DNA of 64,000 nucleotides from Dimorphilus gyrociliatus. Taxonomy: Eukaryota > Animalia > Annelida. Under the pieces are notes generated by a model. That model did no database searches. It saw only the letters and a program-made list of their open reading frames with translations, and was not told the DNA's origin. Shown here piece after piece: positions 21,204 through 52,900 of this stretch; position 1 is the stretch's first letter; every line of letters starts with the position of its first letter. Location of the stretch: positions 310,001-374,000 of the forward strand of contig CAJFCJ010000010.1 of NCBI GenBank assembly GCA_904063045.1, in the 5' to 3' direction. Both the position numbers and the translations under genes were made by a program.

Positions 21204-21687
21204 CTGTATATATATATATATTTCTTCTCCCCGTACAATCCCTATTCAGTTCTTTCTACTTTTCTTCAATTGAAAAATTAATTTACCTTTTAAAAATATT
21301 ATTACAAGGTTTTTAACAATAAAATTTCAATGAAAAATCTTTCAAATCAATTCATTTTACTTTCTCTTTGACTCATTCTTCAATGTCAATTCTCTCTTCA
21401 ACCTACATACGATAGAAGGTGTTAATACTGTAAATTAATTAATCAAGTAATTTATCCTCCCTTTTCTCATTGTTTACCCTGTTAAATTATATAATCAATA
21501 TATAATTATAGACGGAGAGAATTGAATTCTATTATTTTACAAATAATCCAATGAATTTAGAGAAAATAGCTATAAATTAGAGATATATTCAGATTATTCT
21601 ACGGCACGATTTTGTAGTTTTTTCGCACAATCTTTAAATTATTTTTTAATTTTACGACAGCAATTAATATATATTAACTATCGTTCA

Positions 21688-21701
21688 GTAGCCATAGCAA
21701 C
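21688..21701 (+). promoter_or_regulatory. RFX X-box-like site in a CpG-richer island downstream of four-jointed
   Basis: GTAGCCATAGCAAC matches GTTGCCATGGCAAC at 12 of 14 positions. Confidence 0.4.
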
Positions 21702-22798
21702 CAGTCAATGATTGTAGAGCAAGCAGCCGCCGTTGATTTATACGCTCGACCAATTTACATTTAAATAGAGGCACGCAGAGGTGCAAAAACCTATAGATAA
21801 TTATAAATCAACGAAGGAAAACGGTCGCAGGTGCGTCGATGGCGATTTAAATGCTCGGTGGGGAGTAGAATACTTCACATGTGTTCCTTGTCGCACTTCT
21901 CTTTTTCCATTATGGAACATTTTTTACTTTCACTTTTAATTTGAGCTGTTTTCTAAAAGTGTCTTTGTAACAGAATGAAAAGCACCGAGAAGCTATTACC
22001 TCATTCAAGAAGTGACGCCCAAGTCTTTTATATATAATAAGTTACTCATACAAAAAGAATCATGGTTATCAACTATTCAAGACGAGTCCTTTTTAGAGTT
22101 TTTGTATGTTAAACAAAGACACTCATTTGTCAAATTCTCTCTTGCAATTTTTTTTACGTACCAGATGAACTTGTTTGACGAAAGTATTCCTTCGTACCTG
22201 CTTCTGTCTACAAGTACTTAAAATTGTATACATCGCTTTCATCCCTACTTGTACATCTTACTCCTACGGATGTTACCTTTCACTTGTCGGATCTTTTGTC
22301 TTTGTAATATGTGTAAAAATCCTCATTAAAATCGATTAATTATCAATAATGTCTGTTACTTTGAGTTTAAAAAGAAGCTTTTAGAAAGCGTTATCTATGA
22401 TCTGTCGACAGATTGCTGATCAAAGATAACAATAACATACAAAAATAGTTCATGTAAATGCCGTCAATTTATAAATGTTCTTACCTTTATAATTATATTT
22501 ATCGAATAGCGAGATACGAAACATTTTCAGCATAGTTTTCTGTCATATTCTATAGATTTTTTAATAATAACCTATTATTAATTAAAGTATTAATTAGTGT
22601 AATTTTTAATTAAATATTTGAGCAAGAATGATTTTATGACTTTAAACAGAATTTATTAACGAAAGCGCGCGCGAGCGCGTCTAACCCGTAGGTGAGAATG
22701 TCCGCGCAATGCATCAACAATTAGGCAGAGGGTGATACAAAGATATGCACAGTAGATAATTAGTTTTATCAGTCTGATAAGGTAATCTAAACACCGTA

Positions 22799-24140
22799 TT
22801 AAAGCAGATTGCTACAAGACCTCACATGGTCAAGTACATTCTTTATTCTCTCTTTTAACATGATAATATTCTTCTGAGGAAGATATGGCAAGTACTTTTC
22901 GAAAATTGGTTCAATTTTCTTCAACTCCTCTACAAGTAAAGATTCGACATTATGGTGAATATTCTTTAATCTTTCTATAGTTTTCCGTCTGAAGATACAA
23001 GTAGAATTCAGAAGCCGATCGTGTAAATGTTTATACCTGTCAAGAATTCTATAGGAATGTAACAATCCCGATTCATTGTCGAGAAAAATAAGAAAATCTT
23101 GAGCTTTGTATAGATTATGAGCCGAATTAGTTAAAGATTGTTTATTCCATTGTAGATTGTGTAAATTGTTAACAATTCTGTCAACATTTCCAGTAATATA
23201 GTCGAAAATTATCATATCAGTCCATTGAATTAACTCGAGAATTCTCCTCGAATCTTTAATTGTTTTATTGGTTAGAGTAAAATGCTCAGACCTATATTCT
23301 TCAGGTATGTAGGCGGGAGACAGATTTTTTACAAAAGGTGTCAAAATAAGCGGATTCGAGTCCATCCATCTTAGCTCCTTAACCTACATTGAACAATATG
23401 GGAAGAGAAAGAAATAAAATTAAATACAGCAAACATATATATAAGATGATAATAAAAAAGATGAAAAGAGGTTATTTATAGTTGAATTGAATGAAAATAA
23501 AGATAGTGAAGAGTCGGGTAAAATAAACGATTACTCTTCGGCTTGGATTGGCGCAAGTAAGCTGTTAAATAGAATCAGATACCTTCCTTAAAACCTCATT
23601 CATTCAATGAAATTCTCAGTGGACCGTTTAGTGACCCGTAATTCACCCCTACCCATCAATTTACCCAAAGGAATTGATCAACCCAATCGCCTCAAAAATA
23701 CCTATTACTGATGTTATTATCGATAGAAGAGATGGTAATTTAATCTCTACACACGACACTGTAGACTAAAATTTGTAACTGACCTGTTTTTTAACATAAT
23801 CGAAGCGTTTATCGTTTGGAATAGACAAACTAATTGGCAGAATATTATAAATATCCAATAATTTAGATAGCAGATAGGAGAACACTTCGCCTTGCATTAA
23901 ATCAGTATTTAATCTATAGCGAATACAAGCTTTATCGCCATTTTCTAAGGTTGCGAGACGATTTTGCATTCGTCCGCATCCATCTTCTAATTTTATAACA
24001 CTTGAATTTGAGACTTTGTCAGTTTTCCGTTGGATTTTTGAGTACAGTTTTTCACTTTCATCATCCCAATAAATCTTATCAGATAAAGATGATTTAGCAA
24101 AGAGTAACGTTATTATTAGCAGCAAAGTTATCGGCTGCAT
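22799..24140 (-). CDS. fj: Four-jointed / FJX1 family Golgi or secreted kinase, 313 aa
   Basis: Exons 24140-23784 and 23383-22799 (phase 0). Hydrophobic N-terminus MQPITLLLIITLLFAKSSLS. Family motifs: GCGRMQNRLATL..G.KACIRYR.N.D.MQGEVFSY.LS.LL, LIQWTDMIIFDYITGNVDR, catalytic FLDNESGLL, and CIFRRKT. A probable 5' UTR intron runs from 24374 to 24247. Confidence 0.93.
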
Positions 24141-25112
24141 CGTAATTAAATGATGTGACGCTTTTTAATTTCAATTCTTTTCTTGGGTTCTAAAACAGCA
24201 TCCAATTCTTCATCTTGTCAGTTTCGTTTCTATCATTTTTACTCTACTGTTTGCAAAAGAAATAAATAAAAATTAAGATAATGTTCATATAAAACAAGGG
24301 AGAAATTGATTTGTAGAAATTATGGAGATGATAAAACGTAAATCCGTTAAATAAGGGTATAAGAAGTAACGTACCTTGGGAGAGATTTTATCTATAAGCC
24401 CCCTTGGTAAGCAATTGGTTTATGGAGAAAGTAGCGTTCCTTATCTTTTCTTGCAATCAAATCCAACAAAAAAAAAGGAAAAAACTGCTCGGGTGCTGTG
24501 AACGAAACGTGTCGCGACGTTAATCGACAGCGACAACTCGTGCGGTGAGCTATATTCGTACAATACGTTGCCGAAGTGTGAAAGCCCAACGTTCATTGGA
24601 CGGCCAAAGTGAGACTCATGAATATTAATTGTTAACATCGTAATTATTGCCGGCGTTCTCAACGGGGGGGCAGGTTCCTTCTTCTATGTCCTTTGTGTTT
24701 TTACCATATTAGTAATATAAGGAATATATACAAATAATAAAAATTTACGTGGTTTTACATTTCTAAAGGAAAAACAGTCTAGCTAGCGTCAAATTAAATT
24801 GTAATTTTCAGTTTCCGACATGTAATTTTCTCTGAAAGTTGCTCTCCATGGCGTTGGAATAATAAAGGTATATAGGCTTAGAAATTTTTCAACGACTATT
24901 CAACGCCACAACGGGGTGTCGTATTCGATTTGTGAATGTCTGCTGAACTTTGTATAAGCTTGTTTATTTATTTGTCTTGGTTTATTTATCTCTACTATAT
25001 AGTATATTTTACAGATTACATTTCTTTTTTATTATTATTAAGTCTATCTTTTCAAGACATTCAATCAATCAATTTCATTCCTTTCCTCCCCCCTCTTCTA
25101 CCTACCTATCTA

Positions 25113-25148
<36 letters not shown>

Positions 25149-25638
25149 TATATATATCTTTATATGTCTTAACCAACTTTTCACTTTATCCCTATCCCCA
25201 TTCCTTTACTCTAATTAATATCTTTATAAGTTATTGATTTTTCCCATTCCTTTCTAAATTAATTATCATGTAAGTTCTATTAAGATCTTATTAAACATAA
25301 GCTCACTGTACAATATTCTTCCATAATATAATATAATAAGGTGTGAAATTTGTCAAAAGAGGGGTTGGGGTGTGGGAGTGAATAGGAAGGCTAAGTAGGT
25401 CTTTATTGAATAGTTTTTGCTGATGCACAAATTGTCTAAAGATATCATATCTACAACATTTTAACAGAGAGAGTATTGTAGATGCACCGCTTCTATTGCA
25501 GTACTACTACTACTAATGCAGATGCAAACTATAAACCTACAAACTAGCCGTAAAGTGTAACCCGAAACCACCTACCAGCAGTCTAAAAGTAGAACTGTTT
25601 CGGACCAGCATTTAGTCGAGAATTTTTGAGCGAAGGAG

Positions 25639-26655
25639 ATGGCTAGCGGTCAAGTAATACAAGTCCGCCTGAGACGTAATGATACATCACAAGTTTGGGG
25701 ATTTAGAATGAAAGGAGGAGCTGAGAATGGGATGCCTTTGTTCATTGAACACGTTGCTCCTAACGGTAGAGGTGGTAAGGCTGGTTTATCAGCTGGTGAC
25801 GTGATTCTTTCAATTTGCAATGTTCCGGCGCAACATATGACACATATGCAGGCCAAACAGGAGATGCTTAGAGCCGGAAACGAATTGGATTTTGTCGTTG
25901 CCAAGTAAGCGAAGGAGATATTTTCTCTTTCCTTTCAATAATTTTCCATATTTTTCTATATTAATATATAAATAAAAAAGATGATTAAGGACCAATTTTT
26001 TTTCCTTATGAATCATACGCTGTATTTAGTAACATTGCTAATATTTCTTTTTTCCAATAGAGGTGCAATGAGTCAAGCTGGATCGGCTGCAGCCCAGGCG
26101 CAAGAACCTGAACAACGTGTGGAAATTGTAGAAGAATCTCATATTAAACTTGGAGGGCCGACTTTCAAAAATATTAAACCAAAAACCTATCAAATCTTGG
26201 AAGAAGAGATGCAATCTGGAAGAATGGTGAGAAAATCACCACCGGTCGAAGGTTTTTATTTTTCTAGATCAGCCATAAATTTATTTCTATCAAAACATGT
26301 AGGCTTAATTAGTGCCAACCTTAGTATAAACTTGAAAAGTTCTCTCGTCAATAGGCCGATAAATAGGTATAAACTAGTAACTTATCGTAGTATTAGATTG
26401 TTTATTTATACAATTGTTTAGCTATAAAACTAAACAAAAGATAAAACCCCATAAGCTACTTTTGTTAAAGGATCAATCAAGCATAAAATATTTCTTATTC
26501 TATCTTTCGATTACGAAAATAACTTATTTTTTTTTTATTTGTTTTAAACAGGACAAAGGCCTGCGTCGATATTTGATAGGAAAAAGGAAGAAAGATCCGA
26601 CTATCTTAATGCTAAAGGAAAGTCTATTCAAAGAGCTTTTGGTGAAAGGCATTAG
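25639..26655 (+). CDS. Small PDZ protein of the Zasp/ALP/Enigma type with a ZM-like motif and no LIM domains; last-exon frame ambiguous
   Basis: Exon 1 (25639-25904) has the PDZ VRLRR.DTSQVWGFRMKGGAENGMPLFIEHV.PNG.GGKAGL.AGDVIL. Exon 2 starts at 26061 (KPKTYQILEEEM). Exon 3 starts at 26552. The preferred model uses donor 26251 and ends QRPASIFDRKKEERSDYLNAKGKSIQRAFGERH*. Confidence 0.75.
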
Positions 26656-27167
26656 AAAATATCTCTTAATAATATTTTAAATAACTTCCTAATTGTTTCT
26701 TTTTTTTCAATTATTCTATAAAAAAGAGAGTGAAATTTTAACCGGAAATAGTATGCTCATATAATAGATTTTGATTTTGAATATTAATATTTGAATGAAT
26801 AGTAAAAAAAACGAGAACAAATCAGTTTTAAAAAATTCGAATAGTGTTTTTTTTAGATTTCTTTTTTTTTTTTTAAAAAAAAAGAAGATTATTCAATTCT
26901 TTTTTTTCTTGTTGGTCTTTCTATAGAAAAACAGTTAGAGCTATTTTTCTCGATTTCTTATGTTTTTTTAGTATTTTTTTAAAAAAAAAATATGATTATT
27001 AATGTATACTGAATAGTTTTATTTTTAACTTAGTTACCAGTGGCGACATCTATACGACATATTTTTTTTAATTCATGAATACTACTTTTTGTTTTAAAAC
27101 AATTAACTCAAGGAATAGTTAGGTTTTATAGCAATAGATTTTTTTATTAAAAAAAAGGGGATTTTTT

Positions 27168-30100
27168 TTATACGTTGAACTGTTGAATTTTTCTTTTTGA
27201 ATTTGCAAAAGTTTTGTTTAAAACGTTTATCTTGTCGTCTTTTATAGAGTTGTTTTGTATTGAGAGTATTCTTAAAGATGGTAACTTTTCAAGGTTCTCC
27301 ATCAGTTCCATAGCAGTTACATATCCAAAATTACAGCTACCAGCCTCTAATTTAACTAATTTCTTATTAAAGTTCGTAATTGTCCTAAAGAGGACACTTG
27401 CTCCTTCGTCGTTTACTTCGTTACCGTTAAATGATAATTTTCTCATATCTGGAATATTTTTAAGCATTTCCGCCATGGAAATGGCTCCCTTAATACCAAA
27501 ATTACAGCAACTTGCGTATAGCTCTTTTAAATTACGATTTGATTTTGATAGGATGCTAAAAAGCTTTGCTGCTCCCTTGTCATTAATCTTATTGTTACTA
27601 AGATTAATGATTTTTAGTTGTTTTAAATTCTGGACAATTTCTGCTAATTGTTTTACTCCTTCGGTTGAAATTTGGCAACCATCAACGTAAAGTTCGCAAA
27701 GTTTATTCTCAGTTTTTAATACTGACGAAAATATTGATGAAGAACCTCTATCCCCAATGAAGTTATTATTAAAGGCTAATCTCTTCAAATTTGGTAAGTT
27801 CTTAAGAGTTTTTGCCAATTGTAATGCGGCTTCCACAGTAAAATCGCATTCTCTGACAGCTAATGTATTCAATTTAGTGTTTGTCTGAGATATGGACACA
27901 AATAAAGCAGTTGCTCCAGTGTCTTTGATCGAATTAGAGGATATGTCAAATACTTCTAAATAGGGAATATTTCTCAAGGCTTTAGCTAATTCCACTGCTC
28001 CGTGAGCATCAATTTGACAAGAATTCATTATTAAATCAGTTAACAAATGATTATATTTCAATATGGATGAAAATATATGGGTTGCTCCTTCGTCCATAAT
28101 GGGGTTATCATTCAGTCGAATTTCTCTTAAATCTGGCATTTTACCAAGGGATTTCGATAATTCGTAAGCGGCTGAAAATCCAAGATTACAATGATTTAAA
28201 TATAAAGCTTCCATATTTCTACTACGACTAGATATCGAGGAAAGAATGGAACAGGATGAATCTTCATCAAAACAATTATTATCAATAGATAAAACTTTAA
28301 GATACGCCAGCTGTTTTAATGATTCTGCTAATTTAAATCCACCATTAAGTCCAATTTTACAGGACGATGCGTAAAGTTCTTCCAAATACTTGTTGTTATT
28401 AGAGAAAACTTGAAAAATTTCGAATGAACCTTCATTTCTAATGGAATTATCATTTATAGAAAGAATTCTTAATTTTGGTGATTTCTTTAGAGCACCTGCC
28501 AGACTTTTTGCACCTGCTACTTCAATTCCGCAATTTACTATTCTTAATTCTTCCAATTTATTGCTATTATTATTCGAAATTGAATTGAACACCCCTATCG
28601 CTCCGTCATTTTCTATAAAATTATTACTTATATTAAGTATTTTTAATTTCGAAAGATTCTTTAAAATTTTGCCTAAACTCTTAGCTCCGTAATGGCCAAA
28701 ATTGCATTTTGCCACATTCAGCTCTTCTAAGTTTATATTCCATACTGATAAGGATTTGAATAAATTCTCGGCTCCCTGATCTGTTAGACTATTATCGTTT
28801 AATGATAATACCCTTAAATTACGTAGTTTTATCATTGCTTCATTTAGGTCAGTCACACCAGCAAATTCGATGTTACAATTATTTAAGCATAATTCTTCTA
28901 ATCTTTGATTCCATTCGATAATTGTTTGCGATAATAATTTAATTCCCAAATTTAAGATTGGATTATGATTTAATACAAGAATCTTTAATTCTGACAGATT
29001 TTTCAAAGCGTAAACTAAATCTTGGACATCGTTCGCTTGCATATTAGTATTTTCTAAATATAATTTTTCTATTCGATGATTAACTAACTGAATAGCTTGA
29101 TAGACCAAATGATGATGACTAAGACGATTATCACTTAAGTATAACTCTTTCAAATCTGGTATGACCATTAACACTTTTACCACATCCGTAATAGCTAGAC
29201 ACTCCGATTCCAGTTTGTATAGGACTAACTCTTTTAGCTTGCTTTTGCCTTCAACAATACTCGATAATATTGTCTTTATACCATTCTCTTTAATTGGATT
29301 TGATTCAAAGCGTAAAATTTCCAATTTTTTAAGGTGACTAACAGCTTCTGCTAATTTTAAAGCCCCCTTTGCAGTATATCCACAATTAGCAACCAAAACG
29401 TGACGTAAATTTACCGAGTCTTTAGGTATTTCACTAAATAATTCAACTATCCCAGCGTCATTTACTAGATTTCCATTAAGAGATAGAAAGGTTAAATTTT
29501 TTAAGACTTTTAGTGATTTAGCTAAATCATTAATCGATTTTTCAGTAAAACTGCAATAATTAGCATTTAAGTGAGTTAATTTGGTGTTTTTCTTGGAAAA
29601 GGAGGAGAAAAACTTTTGTGCACCCTCATCATAGATAAAATTAGCTTGAATATCAATTTCTTCCAGGAATGTTAAATTTTGTAACGCAACTGCAAATTCC
29701 GCAATGCCATCTATGCCGATACTGCAATTACTCATTTGGATTACTCGTAGTTTATGATTGTATTTTGAGATTGCACTAAAAATGGCTTTTGTACCACGAT
29801 TTTCCAACCGATTATTGCTTAAACAAAGTTGATTTAAATCTGTAAAATTTTCCAATAGTTTTGAGATTTCAATTGCAGCTTTTGAACTGAAACTGCAATC
29901 TTTAGCATAAATCTCTTGTAATTTCTCATGATTCGATGCCAAAATATCGAAAATCGAAATAATTCCTTCGTCTTTTATACGATTTTGATTGATGTTTAAT
30001 ATTTTTAATTCTTTTAAATGACTAAGACATTTGGATAATTCGATTGCGCCTAGTTTGCCAAAATTACAGTTTTCCAAATATAGCTTTTCCAAGTGTTTTG

Positions 30101-33100
30101 GAGAAATTTTAGTAAATATTGCAATAATACCATCGTCTTTAATTGGATTATCCGATAAATTCAACTCTGAAAGATTAGTAAAGTACTTTAAAGAAGAGAC
30201 CAAATGTCTCGCTCCCAAAGAACCGAAAGATGAGTCATTTAAGATTAATTTCTGTAAGATAGCTTCGCTTGAAAGATTGTAGCTTATCATATTTATTCCA
30301 TCATTTTCCAGCCTATTTGAACCTATAACTAGATTCCTCAAGTATTTTAATTTTTGGAGAATGTCACTTAACCTTCTAATTCCGTTTTTGGTAAGAGCAC
30401 AATTATAAACATCCAAATGGGACAATTTATTGTTTGCCACCAATAGACTTTCAATTACTGCCTTTAATCCTTCATCTTTAATAGGATTATTACAGCAAAC
30501 TAGCTTTGTTAAATTTGGAAGGCTTCTTAAAGTTTTAGCCAATTTTATTGCTGTCGAACATCCGAACTGACATCCATCTAGACTAATCTCTGATAACTTA
30601 TTATTAAAATCGTAGAAGACTTTAAAGATTTTATAGGCTCCTTCGTCTTTGATGAGGTTATTATTTAAGTTTAAAATCCTCAATTCTGGTAAATTTTTTA
30701 ATGTAGAAGATAAAGATTTCGCTGCAGCAAGTCCAAAAGAGCAGTTACCAATCTCTAATTCTTCTAATTTTAGATTACTTTCAGATATGGTATTAAATAT
30801 AGCCTTCGCTCCTTCCTCCTTGATACTATTATTATTCAGGTTAAGTCTTTTCAAATTTTGAAAATTTTTAAGTGTATCACCTAATTTAATTGCCTCGTTA
30901 ACTTCCAGATGGCAATCTTCTAAAGAGAGGAGTATAATTTTCTCCGAGTAAATGGAAGAGAAAACCTTATTCGCCACCTCTTCCATTAAATAATTTGAAT
31001 CGAAATTAATGGCTACTAAATCAATCAAATTCATTAGCATCTTTGACAATTCATCGGCCTTTGTAGAATTTAAATTACAATGTCTTAAAGATATCTCTTG
31101 TAAATTCGTATTGAATTGAGAAATAATGCTAAATAAACGATTAGCTTCGTTATCCTCGAATAGGACATTATGGAATATTATTCGATGAAGATTGGGTAAA
31201 GCTTTTAGCGTATTTACTATTTTTTTTATAATGTGACTATTAAGCTGGCAATTAGTTAGGTTTAAAGAGTCTAAATCTATACCCGTTTCTTCTATTTCAT
31301 CCAATATTAACTTTACAACTTGGTATGGTATACAGTTCCCTCCAAAATCCAAAAAGGAAAGTCTGGGTAGCTTCTTAATTACTTTACTGATTTTCTGACT
31401 GCCACACGAACTAAAATTGCAATTGCTTACATTCAACTCCACTAGCTTTTCGTTTAATTCAGATATTTTAGTAAGGAAATTAGAAATTACTTTATCTTTG
31501 AATGGATTATCGTTAATGTATAAACTGTGAAGATTAGGTAAATATTCCAATGATTTTATCAATTCTAAACCAGATTTAGGTCCAAGATTACAATTATTAA
31601 TATATAACTTTTGCATGGAATAGCTTACAGGAGATATCGATGAAAAGAAGGAGCATGCAGCAACTTCGTCCAAATGATTATCCTGAATATCTAAAGTTTC
31701 CAAAAGAGGTAGTTTTTTAATAGTCTGCCCAAGGATTATAATTCCGTTCGATCGAATACCACAATTCTTTATTAACAGATCTTTCAGGTTATGGTTTGTA
31801 TTTAGTATCCCTTGAAATATTTCAATACTTCCCTTATCAGTTAAATTGTTATTGGATAGGGAAAGGGTTTTTAATTTGGGCATTTTCCGTAGAGCCAATG
31901 ATAGTTCAGCTGCTCCAATAAGACCAAAGCCACAATTACCTATTAATAGTTCGTTTAAATTTGCATTTGAAGATGCTAAAGCTCTAAAAATGCTTACAGC
32001 TCCATCTTCTTTGATATTATTACCTTCTAAAACAAGTGTTTGTAATTTTTCAAGGTATTGAAGCGTTTCTGACAACTCAAGAGCACCAGGTGGACCAAAG
32101 AGGCTATTTTTTACGTCCAATTTGACGAGATTATGATTAAACTTTGATATAGCTCTGAATAGAGCGATTGATCCTTGATCTTTGCTCGTGTTATTGGGAA
32201 GAGACAATTCAGTTAAATTTGATAAATGTTCAAAAGAGGATGATAAACACTCAGCTCCATTAGTATTCAATCCGGTATTACCAATGTATAATGCTTTTAG
32301 AGATTTTGATTCGGAAATGACAGTCTGTAAACATTTTATACCATTTTCTCCTATTCCATTGAAATTGATAAATAAAATTCGTAAATTTGTCAAGTTTTTC
32401 AAACCATTTGCTAGTTTTGTAACGCTGTTATAACCGAAACCACAGTTTTTTAATCCTATGATTTCTACAGTACCACTTCCTATTGATAGAGCATCCGAAA
32501 TTGCAATTAAACCTTCGTCTTGTATTGGATTATCATTGCAAATAAAGTTTTTTAAAACCTTAAGTTTACTTAGAGCATCAGCAATCTTTAAAGCTCCTTT
32601 TTCCGTTATTTGGCATTTATTGATGTCCAAAGATATTAATTTCTCATTAAACTCTCCTATAACTTCAAAAAGAGATTTCGCTCCTAAATCTGTAATCGGA
32701 TTTCCATAGATGCTTAATATTTCCAACTGCGGTAAGTTTGATATAGCCTTCGATAGGGCATTTGTACCTTCCACACTAAATCCACAATTGTAGGCGTATA
32801 TTTCAGTAAGATTTTTATTAATTTTTGACACCGATCTAAATAAGTTCATTGCTCCTTCGTCTTTAATCTTTATATTCCCTATGTCAAGAAGTGATAAATT
32901 TGATAAATGAAGGAACACTTCTCCTATCTTTCTTCCTCTTGGTAGATTTGTTGATATTTTAAGAGTAGTAATAATATGAGCAAAATTTTTCAAAGCAATA
33001 ATTACGGCACTCCATTGATCTTCGGATAAATCATCCTTAAAAGTTATAGCTGTTTGATCTCCTAGAAGTTTACAAGCTTTGCCCAAGAATGGAATTTTTT

Positions 33101-36100
33101 CCAAAGTTATAGGATAGTTTATATCAGTCCACATGCTCATATTTTCAGTGATGTAATTAATTAAGGAAGAAAAATCATTTAATTGAGTATTTCCATTAAA
33201 TTTGGTTAATTCATCTAACTTGTTAACTATTCTTAAATTCGACGAATCACCAATGAGCTTTGCAAGACTCTCTAAGCCAATAATACCAAAATCACAGTTT
33301 TCTATATAAAGTTCCTCTAAATGTTTGCATTGTTTCAGAGATTTAAATACAGCGACTGCACCGTCGTCCTTAATACTGTTACCGGAAATGTTTAGAATTT
33401 TTAAGCTATTAGAAAATAGTCTAAATGACTCGGCCAATTTCTTTGCTCCAGGAATACCAAAACCACAATTGCTTACGTTAAAACTTGTTAATGCCGATGA
33501 ACATTTAGATAAGGTATTAAATATTTTTATTGCTCCATTGTCACTAATCCAATTATCCGATATGTTTAAAGCTGACAAATGTCTTTGCTTTTCAATAACA
33601 GCCAATAATTCCTGAATAGATTCTATAGTAAAATATGTATTTTGAATGTTCAATTCGGTTAAATCATCTTGAAAGTTGGATAATATCTTAAATAGGATTT
33701 TAGCTGCAATATCACCAACGAAATTGTTCGAAAATTGAAATATTTGCAAAGTTTTAAAGTTATCCAAAGATTTTGAAAAGTTAACAACTCCGTCGCTATC
33801 TAATTTGCATAATTTCAATTTGCATAATTTGTAATAATAACCATAATTGGCTATCGAAATATTCTGTTCTAATAGAAGTTTTTGCATATAATTGTTTCGT
33901 AGGAAAAAATCCAAATCGTTATTCTTGCAGAGCTGATTATTTCTAATATTCTTCATAATTTCTACTGATTTCCTGTTAATTTCAATATTTTTATCATTAC
34001 TTTTCAATAGAAATTCTAACTGTCCAATTAATTGTTGTAAAGTTATTAAATGTTCATTTTTATCGATAGAATTGAATTGTTTGTCGGATACCATACGAAT
34101 AAAGTTGATAAGACGAGAGCTCTTTTGGAAATCGTTAGTTAGTAATATACCTTTTAAATTATTAATAAATTTACATAGGTAAAATACTAATTGAAGGTAA
34201 ATTTGAATAGTATCGTATTCAACAATGTTATTATAGACTTTAATAATTCTTAATTTGTTAAATTTCTTGATAATTCCACTTAATTGATGTTTATTTTCGC
34301 TATTTTCAATGCATCCTTCCATTTCGAATGATTTTAGATTAAAATAAAGCATATTCAATGATAAATTTGTAAAACAATTCCAATCGAATTGAACGTGTTT
34401 AAACGATAATTCTTCAATCGATTTCCACCGTTGTTTTATAATAGTAATCAATAATCGATTTGAAATTTTTTTCTTATTCAATTTTAAAGCGCTCAATCCT
34501 TTTCTTTTAACTATTAAATCCTTTGATCCTATTAATTGACCCACATCTGTAATGATTCGATTATAGGCTCTTTCATCTTTATATTTGACAAAGTCCATAA
34601 CGTTTAAATAATTTCCAATAAATTCCTTTTCATTATTAAATAACGTTTGCAAATAGTTTGTAAAATTTTGTTGATTTGTAAACGAGTTAAGGCGTTTAAT
34701 AACGTAATTAGACGCAAAGAATGCTTGAATGGATGAATGAATAAATTTTATCTCGCATGTTGCGGTTGGCAATTGTAAATTATTGTTAATTATATATAAA
34801 AGGCCGTTAAAGTAATCATTTCCTTTTTCAAGCATCATTCCATCTTTACTTTGGAAGGCGTCACTTAGTATAATTCTGTCTTTATTGATTGTATCGAAAG
34901 AAATCTTTGAGAAGTATTTGAAAACGGATTTAAATTCATTTGAAGTTGTATCGACTCTATTCTTTTTGCATATGATTTGAATAAACTGCTCGTAAATTGA
35001 GAATTTATTTTCCGGTAGTGTTCCTTCCTTTTCCTTCCATATTTTGCTAATTAAAAATCCAAACAACGGAGTTGAATAAAATGATGGATCGATCTTTTTT
35101 AGTTGTATATATTCAATAATTTCGGCTCCTCTGTTTTCTTCCAGCTGAAGATTTAAATAATTTTCTAATTGGCTATCGTGAAAGCCGTTTAATTGGAAAA
35201 CTGCATCGAAATTGTCTCTTATTTGTACGGCTCTCCATTCTCTAGACCAAACAACTATTGGAAATGGAAAATCCTTCCCTTCAATTAAATCGTAAATCTC
35301 ATTATCGACTAACTGAAATTGATCAGCGCTATCTAAAAATAAAATAATATTTCTAGACGCTCTCGTATTAGACGCTTTTTCATTTAATAAATGTATCATT
35401 ATTTCTTTAGTTAGCCAGGGAACTTGTGAAAAATTTTGCTCCCAAATAGCGTCCATTAAACTTTGTTTTTTGGTAATTTTGTCTAATGATAGGTGAAGAA
35501 TCATTTCAATTCTAATCATATGATACGCACGACGAACCCACAGCATAATTAAGCTATAAGCGTGTATTGTTTTGCCCATTCCCGGCGGGCCTTGTATAAG
35601 AATTCTTTTATAATCATCCTTTAAGACAGATACTATGTAATTACTATCATCAAAACCATCAATAATTTCCTGTTGATTGCCAACAGTCTTTAATCCAATA
35701 ATTGTCATAGGAATGGATAAATCCTCTATCGATTGAGTGTCTTTTTCGAATAGCGAAGTTGATACAATTGAAAACTTCTTTTTGGCATTTTCAGTAATAG
35801 CTTCGGCGGCGTTTAGCCAAGTTCCGTTGATTAGATTGGCCAAGTTTTTATATTCAAAATTTCTTATCGACGATAAAGAATCCGTAACTTCTAGAGTTTC
35901 CAAATATAGAAGTTTTTGAAAGAGTACATTAAAGCAATGTAAATTGAGAAATGTTGACGTATCGACATTTCTTTGAATTTCTTCAATAAAACTCTCCGTT
36001 AAAAATTTCCTCTCCTTTAACTCAAGTACGAATTTTAAAACGTCTTCATCGCTTAAAACTTCCCTGAACTTATCTTTATAGATGTTTATAACAGCATTCT

Positions 36101-36137
36101 TTCTGCCAAATCCTGATAAATCAATGAAATTATCCAT
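27168..36137 (-). CDS. Intronless giant NLR: death-fold-like N-terminus, NACHT, about 75 RI-type LRRs (NLRC3/NLRC5-like architecture), 2989 aa
   Basis: A single 8970-nt ORF, with an in-frame stop just upstream of the ATG. Walker A ILIQGPPGMGKT (35568-35591), Walker B IILFLDSADQ (35319-35333), sensor-1 VVWSR, YSTPLF and winged-helix FIHSSIQAFFAS. These are followed by alternating LxxLxLxxNxIxDxG and LxxLxLxNCxFGxxG repeats. Confidence 0.93.
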   Translation of the reverse strand: MDNFIDLSGFGRKNAVINIYKDKFREVLSDEDVLKFVLELKERKFLTESFIEEIQRNVDTSTFLNLHCFNVLFQKLLYLETLEVTDSLSSIRNFEYKNLANLINGTWLNAAEAITENAKKKFSIVSTSLFEKDTQSIEDLSIPMTIIGLKTVGNQQEIIDGFDDSNYIVSVLKDDYKRILIQGPPGMGKTIHAYSLIMLWVRRAYHMIRIEMILHLSLDKITKKQSLMDAIWEQNFSQVPWLTKEIMIHLLNEKASNTRASRNIILFLDSADQFQLVDNEIYDLIEGKDFPFPIVVWSREWRAVQIRDNFDAVFQLNGFHDSQLENYLNLQLEENRGAEIIEYIQLKKIDPSFYSTPLFGFLISKIWKEKEGTLPENKFSIYEQFIQIICKKNRVDTTSNEFKSVFKYFSKISFDTINKDRIILSDAFQSKDGMMLEKGNDYFNGLLYIINNNLQLPTATCEIKFIHSSIQAFFASNYVIKRLNSFTNQQNFTNYLQTLFNNEKEFIGNYLNVMDFVKYKDERAYNRIITDVGQLIGSKDLIVKRKGLSALKLNKKKISNRLLITIIKQRWKSIEELSFKHVQFDWNCFTNLSLNMLYFNLKSFEMEGCIENSENKHQLSGIIKKFNKLRIIKVYNNIVEYDTIQIYLQLVFYLCKFINNLKGILLTNDFQKSSRLINFIRMVSDKQFNSIDKNEHLITLQQLIGQLEFLLKSNDKNIEINRKSVEIMKNIRNNQLCKNNDLDFFLRNNYMQKLLLEQNISIANYGYYYKLCKLKLCKLDSDGVVNFSKSLDNFKTLQIFQFSNNFVGDIAAKILFKILSNFQDDLTELNIQNTYFTIESIQELLAVIEKQRHLSALNISDNWISDNGAIKIFNTLSKCSSALTSFNVSNCGFGIPGAKKLAESFRLFSNSLKILNISGNSIKDDGAVAVFKSLKQCKHLEELYIENCDFGIIGLESLAKLIGDSSNLRIVNKLDELTKFNGNTQLNDFSSLINYITENMSMWTDINYPITLEKIPFLGKACKLLGDQTAITFKDDLSEDQWSAVIIALKNFAHIITTLKISTNLPRGRKIGEVFLHLSNLSLLDIGNIKIKDEGAMNLFRSVSKINKNLTEIYAYNCGFSVEGTNALSKAISNLPQLEILSIYGNPITDLGAKSLFEVIGEFNEKLISLDINKCQITEKGALKIADALSKLKVLKNFICNDNPIQDEGLIAISDALSIGSGTVEIIGLKNCGFGYNSVTKLANGLKNLTNLRILFINFNGIGENGIKCLQTVISESKSLKALYIGNTGLNTNGAECLSSSFEHLSNLTELSLPNNTSKDQGSIALFRAISKFNHNLVKLDVKNSLFGPPGALELSETLQYLEKLQTLVLEGNNIKEDGAVSIFRALASSNANLNELLIGNCGFGLIGAAELSLALRKMPKLKTLSLSNNNLTDKGSIEIFQGILNTNHNLKDLLIKNCGIRSNGIIILGQTIKKLPLLETLDIQDNHLDEVAACSFFSSISPVSYSMQKLYINNCNLGPKSGLELIKSLEYLPNLHSLYINDNPFKDKVISNFLTKISELNEKLVELNVSNCNFSSCGSQKISKVIKKLPRLSFLDFGGNCIPYQVVKLILDEIEETGIDLDSLNLTNCQLNSHIIKKIVNTLKALPNLHRIIFHNVLFEDNEANRLFSIISQFNTNLQEISLRHCNLNSTKADELSKMLMNLIDLVAINFDSNYLMEEVANKVFSSIYSEKIILLSLEDCHLEVNEAIKLGDTLKNFQNLKRLNLNNNSIKEEGAKAIFNTISESNLKLEELEIGNCSFGLAAAKSLSSTLKNLPELRILNLNNNLIKDEGAYKIFKVFYDFNNKLSEISLDGCQFGCSTAIKLAKTLRSLPNLTKLVCCNNPIKDEGLKAVIESLLVANNKLSHLDVYNCALTKNGIRRLSDILQKLKYLRNLVIGSNRLENDGINMISYNLSSEAILQKLILNDSSFGSLGARHLVSSLKYFTNLSELNLSDNPIKDDGIIAIFTKISPKHLEKLYLENCNFGKLGAIELSKCLSHLKELKILNINQNRIKDEGIISIFDILASNHEKLQEIYAKDCSFSSKAAIEISKLLENFTDLNQLCLSNNRLENRGTKAIFSAISKYNHKLRVIQMSNCSIGIDGIAEFAVALQNLTFLEEIDIQANFIYDEGAQKFFSSFSKKNTKLTHLNANYCSFTEKSINDLAKSLKVLKNLTFLSLNGNLVNDAGIVELFSEIPKDSVNLRHVLVANCGYTAKGALKLAEAVSHLKKLEILRFESNPIKENGIKTILSSIVEGKSKLKELVLYKLESECLAITDVVKVLMVIPDLKELYLSDNRLSHHHLVYQAIQLVNHRIEKLYLENTNMQANDVQDLVYALKNLSELKILVLNHNPILNLGIKLLSQTIIEWNQRLEELCLNNCNIEFAGVTDLNEAMIKLRNLRVLSLNDNSLTDQGAENLFKSLSVWNINLEELNVAKCNFGHYGAKSLGKILKNLSKLKILNISNNFIENDGAIGVFNSISNNNSNKLEELRIVNCGIEVAGAKSLAGALKKSPKLRILSINDNSIRNEGSFEIFQVFSNNNKYLEELYASSCKIGLNGGFKLAESLKQLAYLKVLSIDNNCFDEDSSCSILSSISSRSRNMEALYLNHCNLGFSAAYELSKSLGKMPDLREIRLNDNPIMDEGATHIFSSILKYNHLLTDLIMNSCQIDAHGAVELAKALRNIPYLEVFDISSNSIKDTGATALFVSISQTNTKLNTLAVRECDFTVEAALQLAKTLKNLPNLKRLAFNNNFIGDRGSSSIFSSVLKTENKLCELYVDGCQISTEGVKQLAEIVQNLKQLKIINLSNNKINDKGAAKLFSILSKSNRNLKELYASCCNFGIKGAISMAEMLKNIPDMRKLSFNGNEVNDEGASVLFRTITNFNKKLVKLEAGSCNFGYVTAMELMENLEKLPSLRILSIQNNSIKDDKINVLNKTFANSKRKIQQFNV

Positions 36138-37328
36138 TGTATAACTTTGTTTTTACCTGCCAAAAAAAATTACAACGAAACGATTATAACATCTAAATAA
36201 GATATAGAGATATTCATCAATACCTATACATATTTCTATTAAATAAATATATAGACATAATTTAAATAAATAAACTATTTAAATAGTCTTGTATTAATTA
36301 AATAAAAACATTTAAATGCATTAAAATAAGGAGAAAAAATTTTTTTTACATGTTTAAACTTGTAGGATTTTTTATTTCTTACAAGTTTATTACTTCACGC
36401 ACACACGTATATATACTAACATATATATATATAAACGGTATATATACTGTATATATATTATTATATCTAAAAACCTTTATTCTATAGGCTTTAACCTGTC
36501 AATTACTAAAAAATAGGAAATAATAATAATCCCAAGTGAATAGTAGCAACTATATTAGAAGAAAAAGTGAAAGGGGAGAAAACTATGCACAAACCTTTAC
36601 TAATGAATAGCTTGAATCGAAATGGCTAAAAGAATAGAGGATAGGTCGACAGATGAGAGAAAATATAATAAAAAAGAATATTGAGAGAAGAAGACAAGAG
36701 ATAAATAGTTTATATACATATATATATGTAAACAATAGAAATTACAATACTACATATATATATATATATATATACATACTAATATATATATATATATATA
36801 TTATTGGTACTAAAGAGCGTAGACAGAGAAATAAACGTTTAACAAATCTTTATAAATACCTTATGTGATGGAAACTAAAAGGAGAGGTTGGCTGAATATT
36901 ATTATTAGTTAATCCAACATAATACGCATATTTTTAATAAATGCCAATAGATCCTTTATGACTAAGGTAAAGATTTCTTTTGTCGGATTATTCAATAAAA
37001 AACAAGCCGTAGGTTTTTTTTTTAATATTAAAATAAATTTAAAGTTTTGTTTTTAAGTGTGATATATGATAGAGGGCGTTCCTATTGCTTTTTTGCTTTT
37101 TCCCTCCTCCATATAAAGTCGATAGATTTTTTGCCTACAATCAATTTACTTTAGGTATATTTGTTAATTGAATGTAAATTGAAGGTATTTTTTAATTGTC
37201 AATACAAATAAAAGGTTATATTTGCAAATTCTAATTAAAAATGATTAGATAGAAATATGTGAAGATATTATCTACTTCTTCTTCTTCTTTTTCTTCTTCA
37301 ACTACTACTACTACTTTTAAAGTGTTCT

Positions 37329-48953: not shown

Positions 48954-51840
48954 ATGTCAGCCGACTTCCAGTGTGGAAGTGGCGCGATTCACGAAACTTC
49001 TGCAACAGATGGCGCCTATTCGGAGGAGGAAAACAAGGCTATTAGTGATTCGGGTCCAAGCTTAAACTTGGATACTGAAGAAAAATTCGAAGTTCCACCT
49101 GTATATGAAACCCTCGAGGATGTGCCTAATAAGGAAAATATAATTAATTGCGAAGAACCAAATACAGCGGGTTTGGAACCAGACGAACCGGATGAGCAAA
49201 TTCAACACGAGGAGATAATAGACGAAGAAGTATCAGGTATAATAGCAGATGACATACCAACAGATACAAGTCAAATGGGTGATATCTGCCATGTCTATGG
49301 TGAACAAGATGATACTGAGGATCAATTTGGAGAGGTTGTTCAAGAAGAAGAGCAAAGAGACGACAATAAACTGCTATTCGTTAATGAGTGTGGAGAAATA
49401 ATAGAACCTCCAGCTGGTGATTACATAACCGAAGGAAACGTTATTATTCGTGTAGGATCCAACAGTGATGTGTATGAATGTGAAGTTGCAAATTCTGTAG
49501 ATATTGAGGAGATAAATGATTCTGACATTCCTATGGAGCGCGAACAAACAATTCCTAACGATGAATTTGAAAGTTCAGATGCTAGCTTGATCTCATCTGC
49601 CCCCCTATCTGCTGTTATGGACTCAACTCAAGACGATAGATTCTTCTTGAAGAGTCCAGATTATCAGGACCACGATCCATTTCTTTCTTCTGCTCAGGAC
49701 CAGGAGTCTTCCTGGCAAATGTCTAATACAAATGATGCAGATCCTTCATATATTCCGAAAGGAAAACGTAAAAAAGAAGCAAGAGAATCCAATAAGCCAT
49801 CAAAGATACCAAAGTTAACGAAAGAAATCCCGAAACGAATTAGATTTCCTACGGGACCTGCAGGTCTACCAAAAATGCCTTTTCCTGTTGCTCCACCGGA
49901 TATATTTCCCTTTCCAAGTCGCTCCGACACGACAGAGACTAAGGCTGCTTTAAACAAATTAAACGATTTAACAAAACTAAACCTTCAGAAAGATGGAACT
50001 GTTTCAGGAGCAATGTTTGTCCAAAAAAGCCTCGAAAGGGAGGCGAATAGCAACGAATTAGCACTAACAATGACAAATGTCAGGCACCATCTTTTTGGAA
50101 AGAAAAACGTAGAAGAAACTAAATGCAACGGAACTGGAGGTTGGAGGGTAGTTAAAGGAAAACAACCATCGAATATTAATTCTAAAACGAACCTACTAGA
50201 CATATTGACACCTACCAAACCTCCACCTCAAAACTTCCAAACATTACAACCGCCGCCAATTGGTCCCAAAACCACTTCAATTACTGCTTTCCCACCTAAC
50301 CGACCAGGAGTTGTTCCGCAAACTGTTGTTCCCAAGATACAAAACGGAAGAAGTGGATTTATTGCTAGACCTCTTGATCCGTACCAAGATCCTCCTGCTC
50401 CCTATCCAGGTTCTAATCCCTTAACGCCGGTGATAATACCCACTGAAGGTCTCCCTCCAGCCGTCAAAATTGACGAAGTACATTCCAGAGCACCCCAAGG
50501 TTAGTGTTACACAATTTCTTTTTAAACAAATTTAGAATTACAAAATAGTATACAATTGTCCTACTTAAAACCTAACTTTTGTCAGAGCAAATCGTAGATA
50601 GCTATCAGACATGGATATTTAAAAAAAAAAAGAAAGAATAAGCAAAAATAAATCAAGGTCATTAAGAGAAAACCTTACCCACTATTAAATAAATACTAAA
50701 CAACAATAAGCAATAGTAAAGTTTCAATTTTAGGTCCATTTTCTAAAGTTTTAAATAATTATCAGAACATTTCGATTTCTCTTTAATTTCTAAAATAATA
50801 TGTATTAAAAGAAAAAAAAGAACCGTCAAATTAACAGCTACACCTATATAAAAGCTATTTAATGAGTACATATAAAAATCAGCCTACTTCTTATACTCAA
50901 GGTTCAGGGCAACCTAATCTTGTTATTTTTAAAAAACTTAAGGAACAATATCAGAAAAAATAAATAGAAGAAAGTGATAAAAGAGTAACTTGAAGTTTTG
51001 TTATTTACAATACTTCAGTATTAGTTTGTTTAATTAAGAATAAAATAACATTACTTTAATCTTTTCTCCCTACAAATGTATCTTATTTACCTTTTTACAG
51101 CAGGTGTAAAAAATGGTCGACATTTTAAATGTAACCAATGTACCTACTCAACAACAACGCCTTTATCCCATTTCCGACACTGGTTGACGTCACATTGCTC
51201 CTTTAAACCATATGAATGCTATTATTGCCGTCATCAAACACATACATTAGAACTTCTTAATCGCCATTGTGAAATAGAGCATAGGGTTCATGACAAATTT
51301 TATAGGATTGTCAAAGAACTTGAAATGAATGCTGCCAAGCGATATAATGAAATTTTTGGTATGGCACTGAGGGTCCCTATGGAATGGGCAGGTAACCCCC
51401 ATTTACCACAACAACCACAACAGCAACAAAATCAACAAATGCCTCAACAAGCAATTAAAAATGGCCAAAATTTTGTTCATCCTGTATCTGGAAAACCTCT
51501 AAAGGTTCATAAATATAGGGTCGATAACCTTATATCTTGTGGTCTTTTGAGTGTCGATGAGGCTAAATTACCACCGATCCAAATGTCGGCAATACTGATG
51601 CAGAGGCTAAGATCAGAAAATGGAACCCTGCTTCTCCCACCGCAGTCTGTTCAACAAATGCCCCAACAGCAGCCCCAACAACAGCAACCACAACAACCGC
51701 AACAGCAGCAAGTGGCACAAACAAATAAAGATACGAAAGATTCAGACTATGAAAGCAGTTCACCGCAGAGTGATGATAAATTGAAGCATTCACCGAATAG
51801 TTCACCTGCCCAAACAACATCCGGTGCGCAGGTTAGTTGA
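48954..51840 (+). CDS. C2H2 zinc-finger protein with a long acidic/Pro-rich N-terminus and Gln-rich C-terminal part; 3' end uncertain
   Basis: Exon 48954-50499 joins exon 51101-51831 (NAGNAG acceptor, phase 1). Two fingers: FKCNQCTYSTTTPLSHFRHWLTSH and YECYYCRHQTHTLELLNRHCEIEH. A donor CAG|GTTAGT at 51831 implies further exons. Confidence 0.8.
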
Positions 51841-52900
51841 TCTCAGCCTCTTTTCTCTCTTGCTCTCTCTCTCTCTCTCTTCCGTGCCTTATTTGTAAAT
51901 AAGATTGCCTTGTAAATAAGAAAATTAAAAAGTTACTGTGTAATGTGTTCTATACAATAATTTTTCTTTTTATATGGATAAAAATAGAATTTTCCATTTC
52001 TCACAATATTATTCATTTTATTTTCTTCCGTTCCAGTTCAAGAGAGTAAATAATTTCCCTGCGAAATAAAGTAAACGTACAAAAGTTTTTACAGTATTAT
52101 TGAAAGAAAACAATGAAAAAAATAAGATAAAAACAAAAAAATAAGCAACTTTCCCTTCAATCATCATTCCTTAATCTACCCACCCCCGTACCATTGCTCT
52201 ATTACTCCCTATATTCATTTTGAGAAGAAAAAAATAAACACGACAAGAGATAGAATGTATTTTCTTGGCACTATATATATATATATAGTAATATTTTTGT
52301 TTCACTTGTAGAATTGCGTAAATTGATCATTAGCTCGCAATTCAAACTTGTTATTTTTTGTCTTATTTCAACAAAATAAGGAATTTTAAAAAGTATTAAA
52401 TTAATAGGGAAATATGAAAAATATCTTTTTCTTATCATAACAAAAACTTTTAACATTAAGATAAAAAGAAAAGAAAATAAGGAAATTAAAAGAATTGTAT
52501 TTTCTGTTTCTTATCGATGATTTTTTTTTGTTGCATTGAAATTTTTACCCCTTTTCCTGCTTCACCATCCTCCCTATCCCTCGTTCCCTTTTATTGAATA
52601 ATGTTGTCTTTAATGGAATAATTCTAATAATTCATAAAATATTGTTTTTTTTTTTTTTTAATTTTAATCCTGTCAAGCGTAGAATATTTTTGTTCTATTT
52701 TTAAATTGTACATAATACTTCGAAAGCAGAATGCTCAAAAAATTTGTGGTCGCCAGATAATCATTTTTTTTGTTCGCCAATTGTATGTTTAAAAGTGTAT
52801 AGATACGGTTGATGTGCATAAAATCCTTATCTATGCTCAATTATATATATAGTTTGTACTTCTAATTCCTCTTATATGAGATGTAAAAATTCAAATTAGT

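Follow-up and report, generated by a model that had tools for sequence, protein, structure and literature searches.

Among animal NLRs, the one that has been called the largest is NLRC5, a protein of 1866 amino acids whose 20–43 predicted leucine-rich repeats (LRRs) have been modelled as two full circles (PMC3848420). The LRRs of NLRC4 wind in a right-handed manner, with ~20 repeats per turn and a pitch of 32–34 Å (PMC4598782). NLRs of sponge clade C are reported to carry the NACHT domain and LRRs together on one exon, as does one NLR each from Capitella, Lottia and Nematostella (PMC3879445), and annelids other than Capitella and two tubeworms are said to have no NLR homologue (PMC8476170). 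The gene considered here belongs to the miniature marine annelid Dimorphilus gyrociliatus, with a reported genome of 78 Mb and 14,203 genes (PMC10192322), and lies in a stretch of 64,000 nucleotides (GenBank assembly GCA_904063045.1, contig CAJFCJ010000010.1, positions 310,001 to 374,000), referred to below as the window. On the minus strand at window positions 27168–36137, a single open reading frame (ORF) with an ATG start and a TAA stop encodes a protein of 2989 amino acids, most of which is made up of ~75 LRRs of the ribonuclease inhibitor (RI) type. The gene is probably an intact and selectively maintained NLR of the NLRC kind, in which a CARD-like death-fold domain and a NACHT–helical–winged-helix switch precede the repeats. 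Its repeat number is extreme among described animal NLRs, with an LRR tail some two to three times longer.

The second-longest ORF in the window is only 516 amino acids. At the window's GC content of ~30%, stops make up ~8% of random codons, so that the chance of a frame of 2994 codons remaining open is, by our own arithmetic, about e^-237, and the frame is not a chance event. The single-exon coding sequence (27168–36137, minus strand, 2989 codons plus TAA) is collinear with that of a 2996-amino-acid orthologue (L013:902–9892) described below. An identical 2989-residue protein, predicted but not named, is already deposited in NCBI and UniRef.

Between residues 797 and 2989, a motif search, hidden Markov models (HMMs) made from the protein's own repeats and a register table give 73 in-register RI-type repeats, 37 Asn-type units (mostly of 29 residues) alternating with 36 Cys-type units (28 residues) with no exceptions. 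Thr, Ser or Leu stands at the Cys position in six units, and in two of the Asn type the register slips by one residue. The array is broken only at residues 968–1080. An AlphaFold model of residues 1–1140 contains extra beta/alpha units, two at 1029–1080 and five or six degenerate ones at 548–700, and the total including degenerate units is ~75–81. The sequence-only reading of this DNA had counted about 73 well-formed and a few degenerate repeats within a single 8970-nucleotide exon and had recognised the alternation of 28-residue Cys-type and 29-residue Asn-type units as that of RI; both observations hold. RI is also the best sequence match to the repeats among solved structures in the PDB (E 2.4e-36, across the entire chain), with NLRP5, NLRP14, NLRP9 and NLRP3 next, and the Pfam LRR_6 profile matches at 201 bits. 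With its 73 units, LRR_6 match and PDB matches, the tail has the RI-class C-terminal LRRs of an animal NLR.

N-terminal to the well-formed repeats are the five or six degenerate, LRR-like beta/alpha units at residues 548–700 (window 34038–34496, minus strand, as are all features of the protein given here), recognised from the strand and helix pattern in the model at a predicted local distance difference test score (pLDDT) of 55–73. They are followed by a low-confidence linker at residues 703–778 (33804–34031; pLDDT 31–47); residues 701–800 are 64% identical to the orthologue. LRR block 1 comprises six RI-type repeats at residues 797–967 (33237–33749), supported by the register table, the own-repeat HMMs and a pLDDT of 70–89. 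A non-LRR island at residues 968–1028 (33054–33236) has no repeat motif and is modelled with two helices at a pLDDT of 29–43; residues 901–1100 around it are 68–80% identical to the orthologue, among the best conserved parts of the tail. LRR block 2, at residues 1029–2989 (27171–33053), is uninterrupted in the register table and consists of two degenerate and 67 RI-type repeats.

The hydrophobic autocorrelation of the array peaks at lag 57, the length of a double repeat. The 36 double repeats are on average 29% identical to each other (maximum 52%), with no neighbour effect, the array has 24% identity at lag 57, and there are no DNA-level tandem repeats of period 84 or 171 in the gene. If the published NLRC4 and NLRC5 geometries can be extrapolated to it, the 69 uninterrupted repeats of block 2 would plausibly form about 3.4–3.5 turns with an axial length of ~115 Å.

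The NACHT NTPase, helical and winged-helix domains occupy residues 171–545 (34503–35627), as judged from Pfam and Foldseek. The Pfam NACHT profile matches at residues 178–329 with 38.3 bits, against a cut-off of 26.7. Foldseek places NLRC4 first for the model of residues 1–1140 (E 6.6e-26), then NLRP14, NOD2 (7e-23), NLRP9 and NLRP3, with a probability of 1.00 for both NLRC4 and NOD2; this model is of moderate quality (mean pLDDT 67.8), and it and the death-fold assignment are built on shallow alignments of 12–14 sequences. A sequence search of residues 1–800 against solved structures in the PDB gave no match at E 0.01. There is a single Walker A motif, GPPGMGKT, at residues 183–190 (35568–35591), whose G183, G188 and K189 do not vary across 14 members of the family. 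The Walker B motif, LFLDSADQ, at residues 266–273 (35319–35342), has Gln where the family has Glu: in an alignment with 12 paralogues, Glu is present at the end of the motif in all 12, mostly as DGADE, and DSADQ is found only in this gene and its orthologue. In P-loop NTPases generally, an acidic residue at this position supports hydrolysis, and by analogy the Gln may slow ATP hydrolysis. Sensor-1 (WSREW) and the helical-domain Pro357, invariant in the family, are present, and the winged-helix motif FIHSSIQAFFAS (34710–34745) contains His467, which is also invariant. The family consensus, FxHLSFQEFFAA, is the hallmark of animal NLRs such as NLRP3, NOD2 and NLRC4. The Pfam match, Walker A, Walker B and sensor-1 identify a NACHT-class STAND NTPase, and Pro357, His467 and the Foldseek matches identify the helical and winged-helix domains, with the conserved His that contacts ADP.

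The N-terminal domain (residues 10–116; 35790–36110) was modelled by AlphaFold2 from a 12-sequence family alignment as six helices at a pLDDT of 84–93. When the model was compared with 48,161 chains by VIA-align, the top 50 were nearly all death-fold domains, with CARDs first. The Z scores were 9.3 for the Apaf-1/caspase-9 CARD disk, 9.1 for the CED-4 CARD (root-mean-square deviation 2.7 over 96 residues), 8.5 for the FADD death domain and 7.5 for the NLRC4 CARD, with pyrin domains close behind; values of 7–9 are in a range that, the tool warns, can reflect a common helical arrangement. The death-fold match spans 96 of the ~100 residues. Foldseek gave no significant E-value for this model, though CARDs headed its list. 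The modelled structure thus supports a divergent death-fold, CARD-like domain at the level of the superfamily and does not establish the CARD subfamily. The death-fold N-terminus, the NACHT domain, the NLR motifs and the Foldseek matches to NLRC4 and NOD2 all agree with the sequence-only assignment of the gene as an NLR.

A word search found one close relative, the 2996-residue protein mentioned above, on a 16-kb contig from run SRR23372229. The flank of this contig is collinear with window 26808–21592 at 74–90% DNA identity, and the relative is therefore a syntenic orthologue in a sister species; the collinear downstream flank includes Fam20C/four-jointed-like exons. The two proteins are 65% identical, with five indels totalling 7 amino acids over 9 kb. 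Nonsynonymous divergence (dN) is 0.237, and synonymous divergence (dS) is 1.7 by the Nei–Gojobori method, where it is saturated, or 0.97 from four-fold sites, giving a dN/dS (omega) of ~0.14–0.24, lowest in the NACHT domain (0.04). The small number of indels and the low dN/dS show that the gene is real and under purifying selection, as had been suspected from the intactness of the frame.

Within the repeats, the proportion of nonsynonymous differences (pN) is 0.17 at scaffold positions 1, 4, 6, 9 and 11, and 0.25 at the exposed beta-strand positions 2, 3, 5, 7 and 8, where the loop has 0.26 and the helix 0.23. The pattern of diversification at the beta-strand implied by the sequence-only reading is therefore not borne out between these species. 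For 34 of the 36 double repeats the best match is the positional orthologue, at a mean of 61.5% identity. By this comparison the array is old, each repeat is individually conserved and repeat number is constrained. Since each repeat keeps its own sequence between the species, the tail would seem to offer a constant set of specific surfaces instead of diversifying rapidly. Synonymous sites are near saturation, and weak positive selection at a few sites would escape detection.

The gene is one of a large family. In the 77.9-Mb, 349-contig assembly there are at least 98 NACHT matches, essentially all above the Pfam cut-off; the N-terminal death-fold domain specific to the family is matched at least 64 times. 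Many of the loci for either domain are on small unplaced contigs. This repertoire appears to be undescribed, and it contradicts the reported absence of NLRs from such annelids (PMC8476170). Every family member examined is an uninterrupted ORF whose ATG lies just past an in-frame stop, and all longer members examined have the 57-residue double-repeat periodicity. Paralogues examined are 25–32% identical to the window gene, the closest being 32% identical over the N-terminal 800 residues and having ~27 and ~48 repeats; paralogues that share its 1.76-Mb contig are deposited under the names DgyrCDS8240 and DgyrCDS8241.

Only one open frame of the family exceeds that of the window gene in length. 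This paralogue, G000:C38:147729–157442, was read across two adjoining stretches of one contig (L014:730 into L015) and encodes 3237 residues with ~87 repeat lengths. Its successive 57-residue units are 65% identical, which indicates recent amplification or homogenisation of the array, an evolution that, on these sequences, is opposite to that of the old, diverged array of the window gene. A 2945-residue open frame on contig C193 was rejected as inflated by a run of N (1393 X), and open frames of ~2440–2490 residues elsewhere in the genome are 'double NLR' genes with two NACHT domains. At least 13 Pfam CARD domains are also present elsewhere in the genome, and the proteins that contain them are possible signalling partners, candidates on sequence grounds.

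How might such a protein work? By analogy with solved NLRs, the LRR solenoid would be a right-handed spring of ~3.5 turns, which may keep the ADP-bound NACHT domain closed while presenting a very long surface to ligands. When a ligand binds or is lost, nucleotide exchange and oligomerisation would become possible, and the clustered CARD-like domains could recruit a death-fold partner, for example a caspase or an adaptor.

Several observations weigh against this view of the gene as a CARD-bearing NLR with a spring-like sensor tail. The geometry of the superhelix is borrowed from NLRC4 and NLRC5. Pfam gave nothing credible for the N-terminal domain, with the CARD and Death profiles unmatched, and the VIA-align scores carry the caveat given above. 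No diversifying selection on the concave face was seen between the orthologues, a result whose power is limited by synonymous saturation. There is no recent duplicate of the gene, the nearest paralogue being 32% identical. The strict one-to-one conservation and the Walker B Gln are features unlike those of immune receptors engaged in an arms race. A word search with the last 400 residues found no fragment proteins at E 1e-30, which is uninformative on transcription either way.

These points lead to the strongest rival explanation, that the protein is a conserved NLR but not a receptor: a scaffold or regulator in which the solenoid is an assembly platform and the NACHT domain is a slow or hydrolysis-defective nucleotide lock. 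This we consider appreciably less probable than a receptor, though it deserves serious attention. Comparable cases are NLRP5 and NLRP14 in the cytoplasmic lattices of oocytes, and the transcriptional co-activators NLRC5 and CIITA. A scaffold or regulator would fit the one-to-one orthologue, which is syntenic and retains every repeat in position, the purifying selection with exposed beta-strand residues evolving no faster than helix or loop, the lack of a close paralogue (the nearest being 32% identical), the Walker B Gln in both species against Glu in all 12 paralogues, and a gene-specific upstream block conserved between the species. NLRP5 and NLRP14 are also the best NLR matches to the repeats in the PDB, which may only be repeat similarity. 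However, a family of ~100 members is typical of lineage-specific immune expansions, the death-fold signalling domain is kept and the NACHT motif set is otherwise complete. Near-saturated synonymous sites could also hide weak positive selection at a few sites, and what Gln in place of Glu does to the activity of the NACHT domain is supposed from the behaviour of P-loop NTPases in general.

A bolder variant, which we hold to be doubtful, is that of a 'housekeeping' giant NLR, a spring of ~3.5 turns bearing ~75 individually conserved surfaces, its NACHT domain locked in the nucleotide-bound state through loss of the Walker B glutamate. Such a protein could form a fixed multivalent scaffold or guard many host proteins at once.

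An origin as a retrogene, or by very recent lineage-specific amplification, had been suggested from the sequence alone. The coding sequence does lack introns while its neighbours are split into short exons, and the annelid family is large. But every paralogue examined, at 25–32% identity, is likewise uninterrupted, so that no intron-containing parent is seen, and the orthologue, at near-saturated synonymous divergence, is also intronless and syntenic. Nor do the repeats bear the marks of recent duplication, with their mean identity of 29%, absence of a neighbour effect and lack of DNA-level tandem repeats. Single-exon NACHT and LRR genes are reported from sponge, Capitella, Lottia and Nematostella (PMC3879445). 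Taken together, the intronless paralogues and orthologue and the published single-exon NLRs indicate an old family trait, not retroposition of the window gene, and we regard a retrogene or recent amplification as very improbable.

That the locus was misassembled, or that the gene is dead and its frame open by chance, is hardly credible: repeat-rich genes are prone to misassembly and the search with the last 400 residues returned no fragment proteins, but an independent assembly of another species has the same 9-kb frame with five small in-frame indels and an omega well below 1, the repeats (29% identity) are too diverged to collapse or expand in assembly, and 2994 open codons at 30% GC are not chance.

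The upstream block noted above is a candidate promoter or regulatory element, found by comparison with the orthologous locus at window 36224–36320 (minus strand), 87–183 nucleotides before the ATG. It is ~95% identical to the sister species within a flank that otherwise aligns poorly. Within it are three ATTTAAAT palindromes, CATTTAAATG and CTATTTAAATAG among them, spaced 33–34 and 17 nucleotides apart in both species. Among 13 paralogue upstream regions, a single copy of ATTTAAAT is present in two and the full set in none. A splice-acceptor-like sequence, TTTTTTTTGGCAG, stops 20 nucleotides short of the ATG; a donor-like GT is found another 67 nucleotides upstream, where the conserved block ends (window 36157–36223). 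An intron in the 5' untranslated region was considered as a possibility only and is not claimed, the acceptor- and donor-like sites being unconserved in the orthologue and paralogues. At the other end of the gene, an AATAAA read from the sequence 20 nucleotides past the stop codon (27143–27148, minus strand) is a candidate polyadenylation signal. A bacterial promoter and terminator scan of the 3' flank was set aside as irrelevant to a eukaryote.

Synonymous divergence between the two species is very uneven by region. At four-fold sites the NLR differs from its orthologue by 54.5% and the adjoining syntenic genes by 30%; at a second NLR locus (G000:C10:1607001–1617000; L024 versus L023:6960–16959) the corresponding values are 55.6% and 50%. 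Two sister-species runs share an identical neighbour protein and so are from the same species. Old balanced haplotypes, an explanation considered for the raised divergence at the window locus, were rejected since the contrast is not repeated at the second locus. On these comparisons, the contrast at the first locus reflects unusually conserved neighbours. The Fam20C/PDZ neighbourhood (window 21600–26800 versus L013:10430–15780) is indeed unusually conserved, non-coding DNA included, at 74–90% identity. Elsewhere in the window, two long ORFs on the plus strand, of 516 residues (48954–50504) and 254 residues (51076–51840), have no Pfam match and lie within a stretch of strong GC and AT skew (50001–52000).

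With the window gene, the size range known for animal NLRs becomes wider, and an apparently undescribed expansion of ~100 intronless NACHT loci comes to light in one 78-Mb genome. That ~75 repeats are kept one for one between two species implies that the long tail is used, as opposed to having been left behind by slippage of repeats. Being small and transparent, and amenable to culture, D. gyrociliatus is a workable system for asking what very long LRR solenoids bind and whether they serve as sensors or scaffolds. If the doubtful 'housekeeping' reading were true, the NLR chassis would have been put to a new use outside the arms race repeatedly, by extreme lengthening of the LRR tail, because giants of 3000–4500 residues also occur on other low-GC contigs.

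Such giants bear on how unusual the gene is. Against 1.84 billion representative sequences, residues 1–800 gave only 250 matches at E 0.001, with no longer protein in the top 150 listed. When 1001 residues of the repeats were used in a word search, however, dozens of NACHT-bearing predictions of 2000–5191 residues aligned with >90% of the query. Three of these, P0156 (4025 residues), P0157 (3887) and P0160 (4468), come from contigs of environmental assemblies (ERZ25068803, ERZ25084387 and JGI 3300017829) and are each encoded by one unbroken ORF, 12.1, 11.7 and 13.4 kb long respectively, with a gene GC content of 31–35% (L028:6001–18078, L029:6001–17664 and L030:60–13466). Each has one NACHT domain with one Walker A and ~90 or more 28-residue LRRs; a simple motif count of repeat cores gives 91, 93 and 90 respectively, against 67 for the window protein. 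P0156 alternates Asn- and Cys-type repeats in 48 of 56 adjacent pairs. A literature search found no paper describing any of the three. These and the fish LOC125254758 products, of up to 5191 residues, share with the window protein a single N-terminal NACHT domain and a very long array of 28-residue LRRs, but their repeats are only 22–26% identical to it and most lack the Asn/Cys alternation. With these unnamed proteins and the 3237-residue paralogue, the window gene can no longer be called unique; the sequence-only reading had also allowed that equally long RI-type NLRs might already be common and described, and such proteins do exist, but none was found described.

Among described genes, the single-exon invertebrate NLRs (sponge clade C AqNLRs, Capitella NLRC, Lottia NLRD and Nematostella NLRX; Yuen et al. 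2014, PMC3879445) share the one-exon NACHT and LRR organisation, the death-fold N-terminus and large lineage-specific expansions (55 in Capitella), and the part of that survey drawn on here reports no comparably long LRR arrays. The soybean 'giant NLR' Rps11 shares an unusual size within an expanded family, but it belongs to the NB-ARC NLRs of plants, has plant-type LRRs and is encoded by a gene of 27.7 kb (PMC8571336), and neither its NTPase subclass nor its repeat class is homologous.

Ribonuclease inhibitor has the same strict alternation of 28-residue Cys-type and 29-residue Asn-type repeats, but is a horseshoe of 15–16 repeats (~456–461 residues) with no NTPase or death-fold domain, whereas the window protein has about five times as many repeats and a STAND switch. 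Membership of the RI family was accordingly ruled out by the death-fold domain, the NACHT domain and the ~75 repeats. The vertebrate NLRC proteins (NOD1/NOD2, NLRC3, NLRC4 and NLRC5) share what is modelled here as a CARD-like death-fold N-terminus, the NACHT, helical and winged-helix domains with the conserved His, and C-terminal RI-class LRRs of 28/29 residues, those of NLRC5 being likewise modelled as a multi-turn helix (PMC3848420). They differ in that their LRRs are split into repeat-sized exons, where the window coding sequence is intronless, and the window NACHT domain is divergent, with no PDB sequence match at E 0.01 and Gln for Glu in Walker B. The largest difference is one of length, for the ~75 repeats of this 2989-residue protein compare with 16 in NLRC4 and 20–43 predicted in the 1866-residue NLRC5 (PMC3848420), so that the count is, as first supposed, far above those of described vertebrate NLRs.

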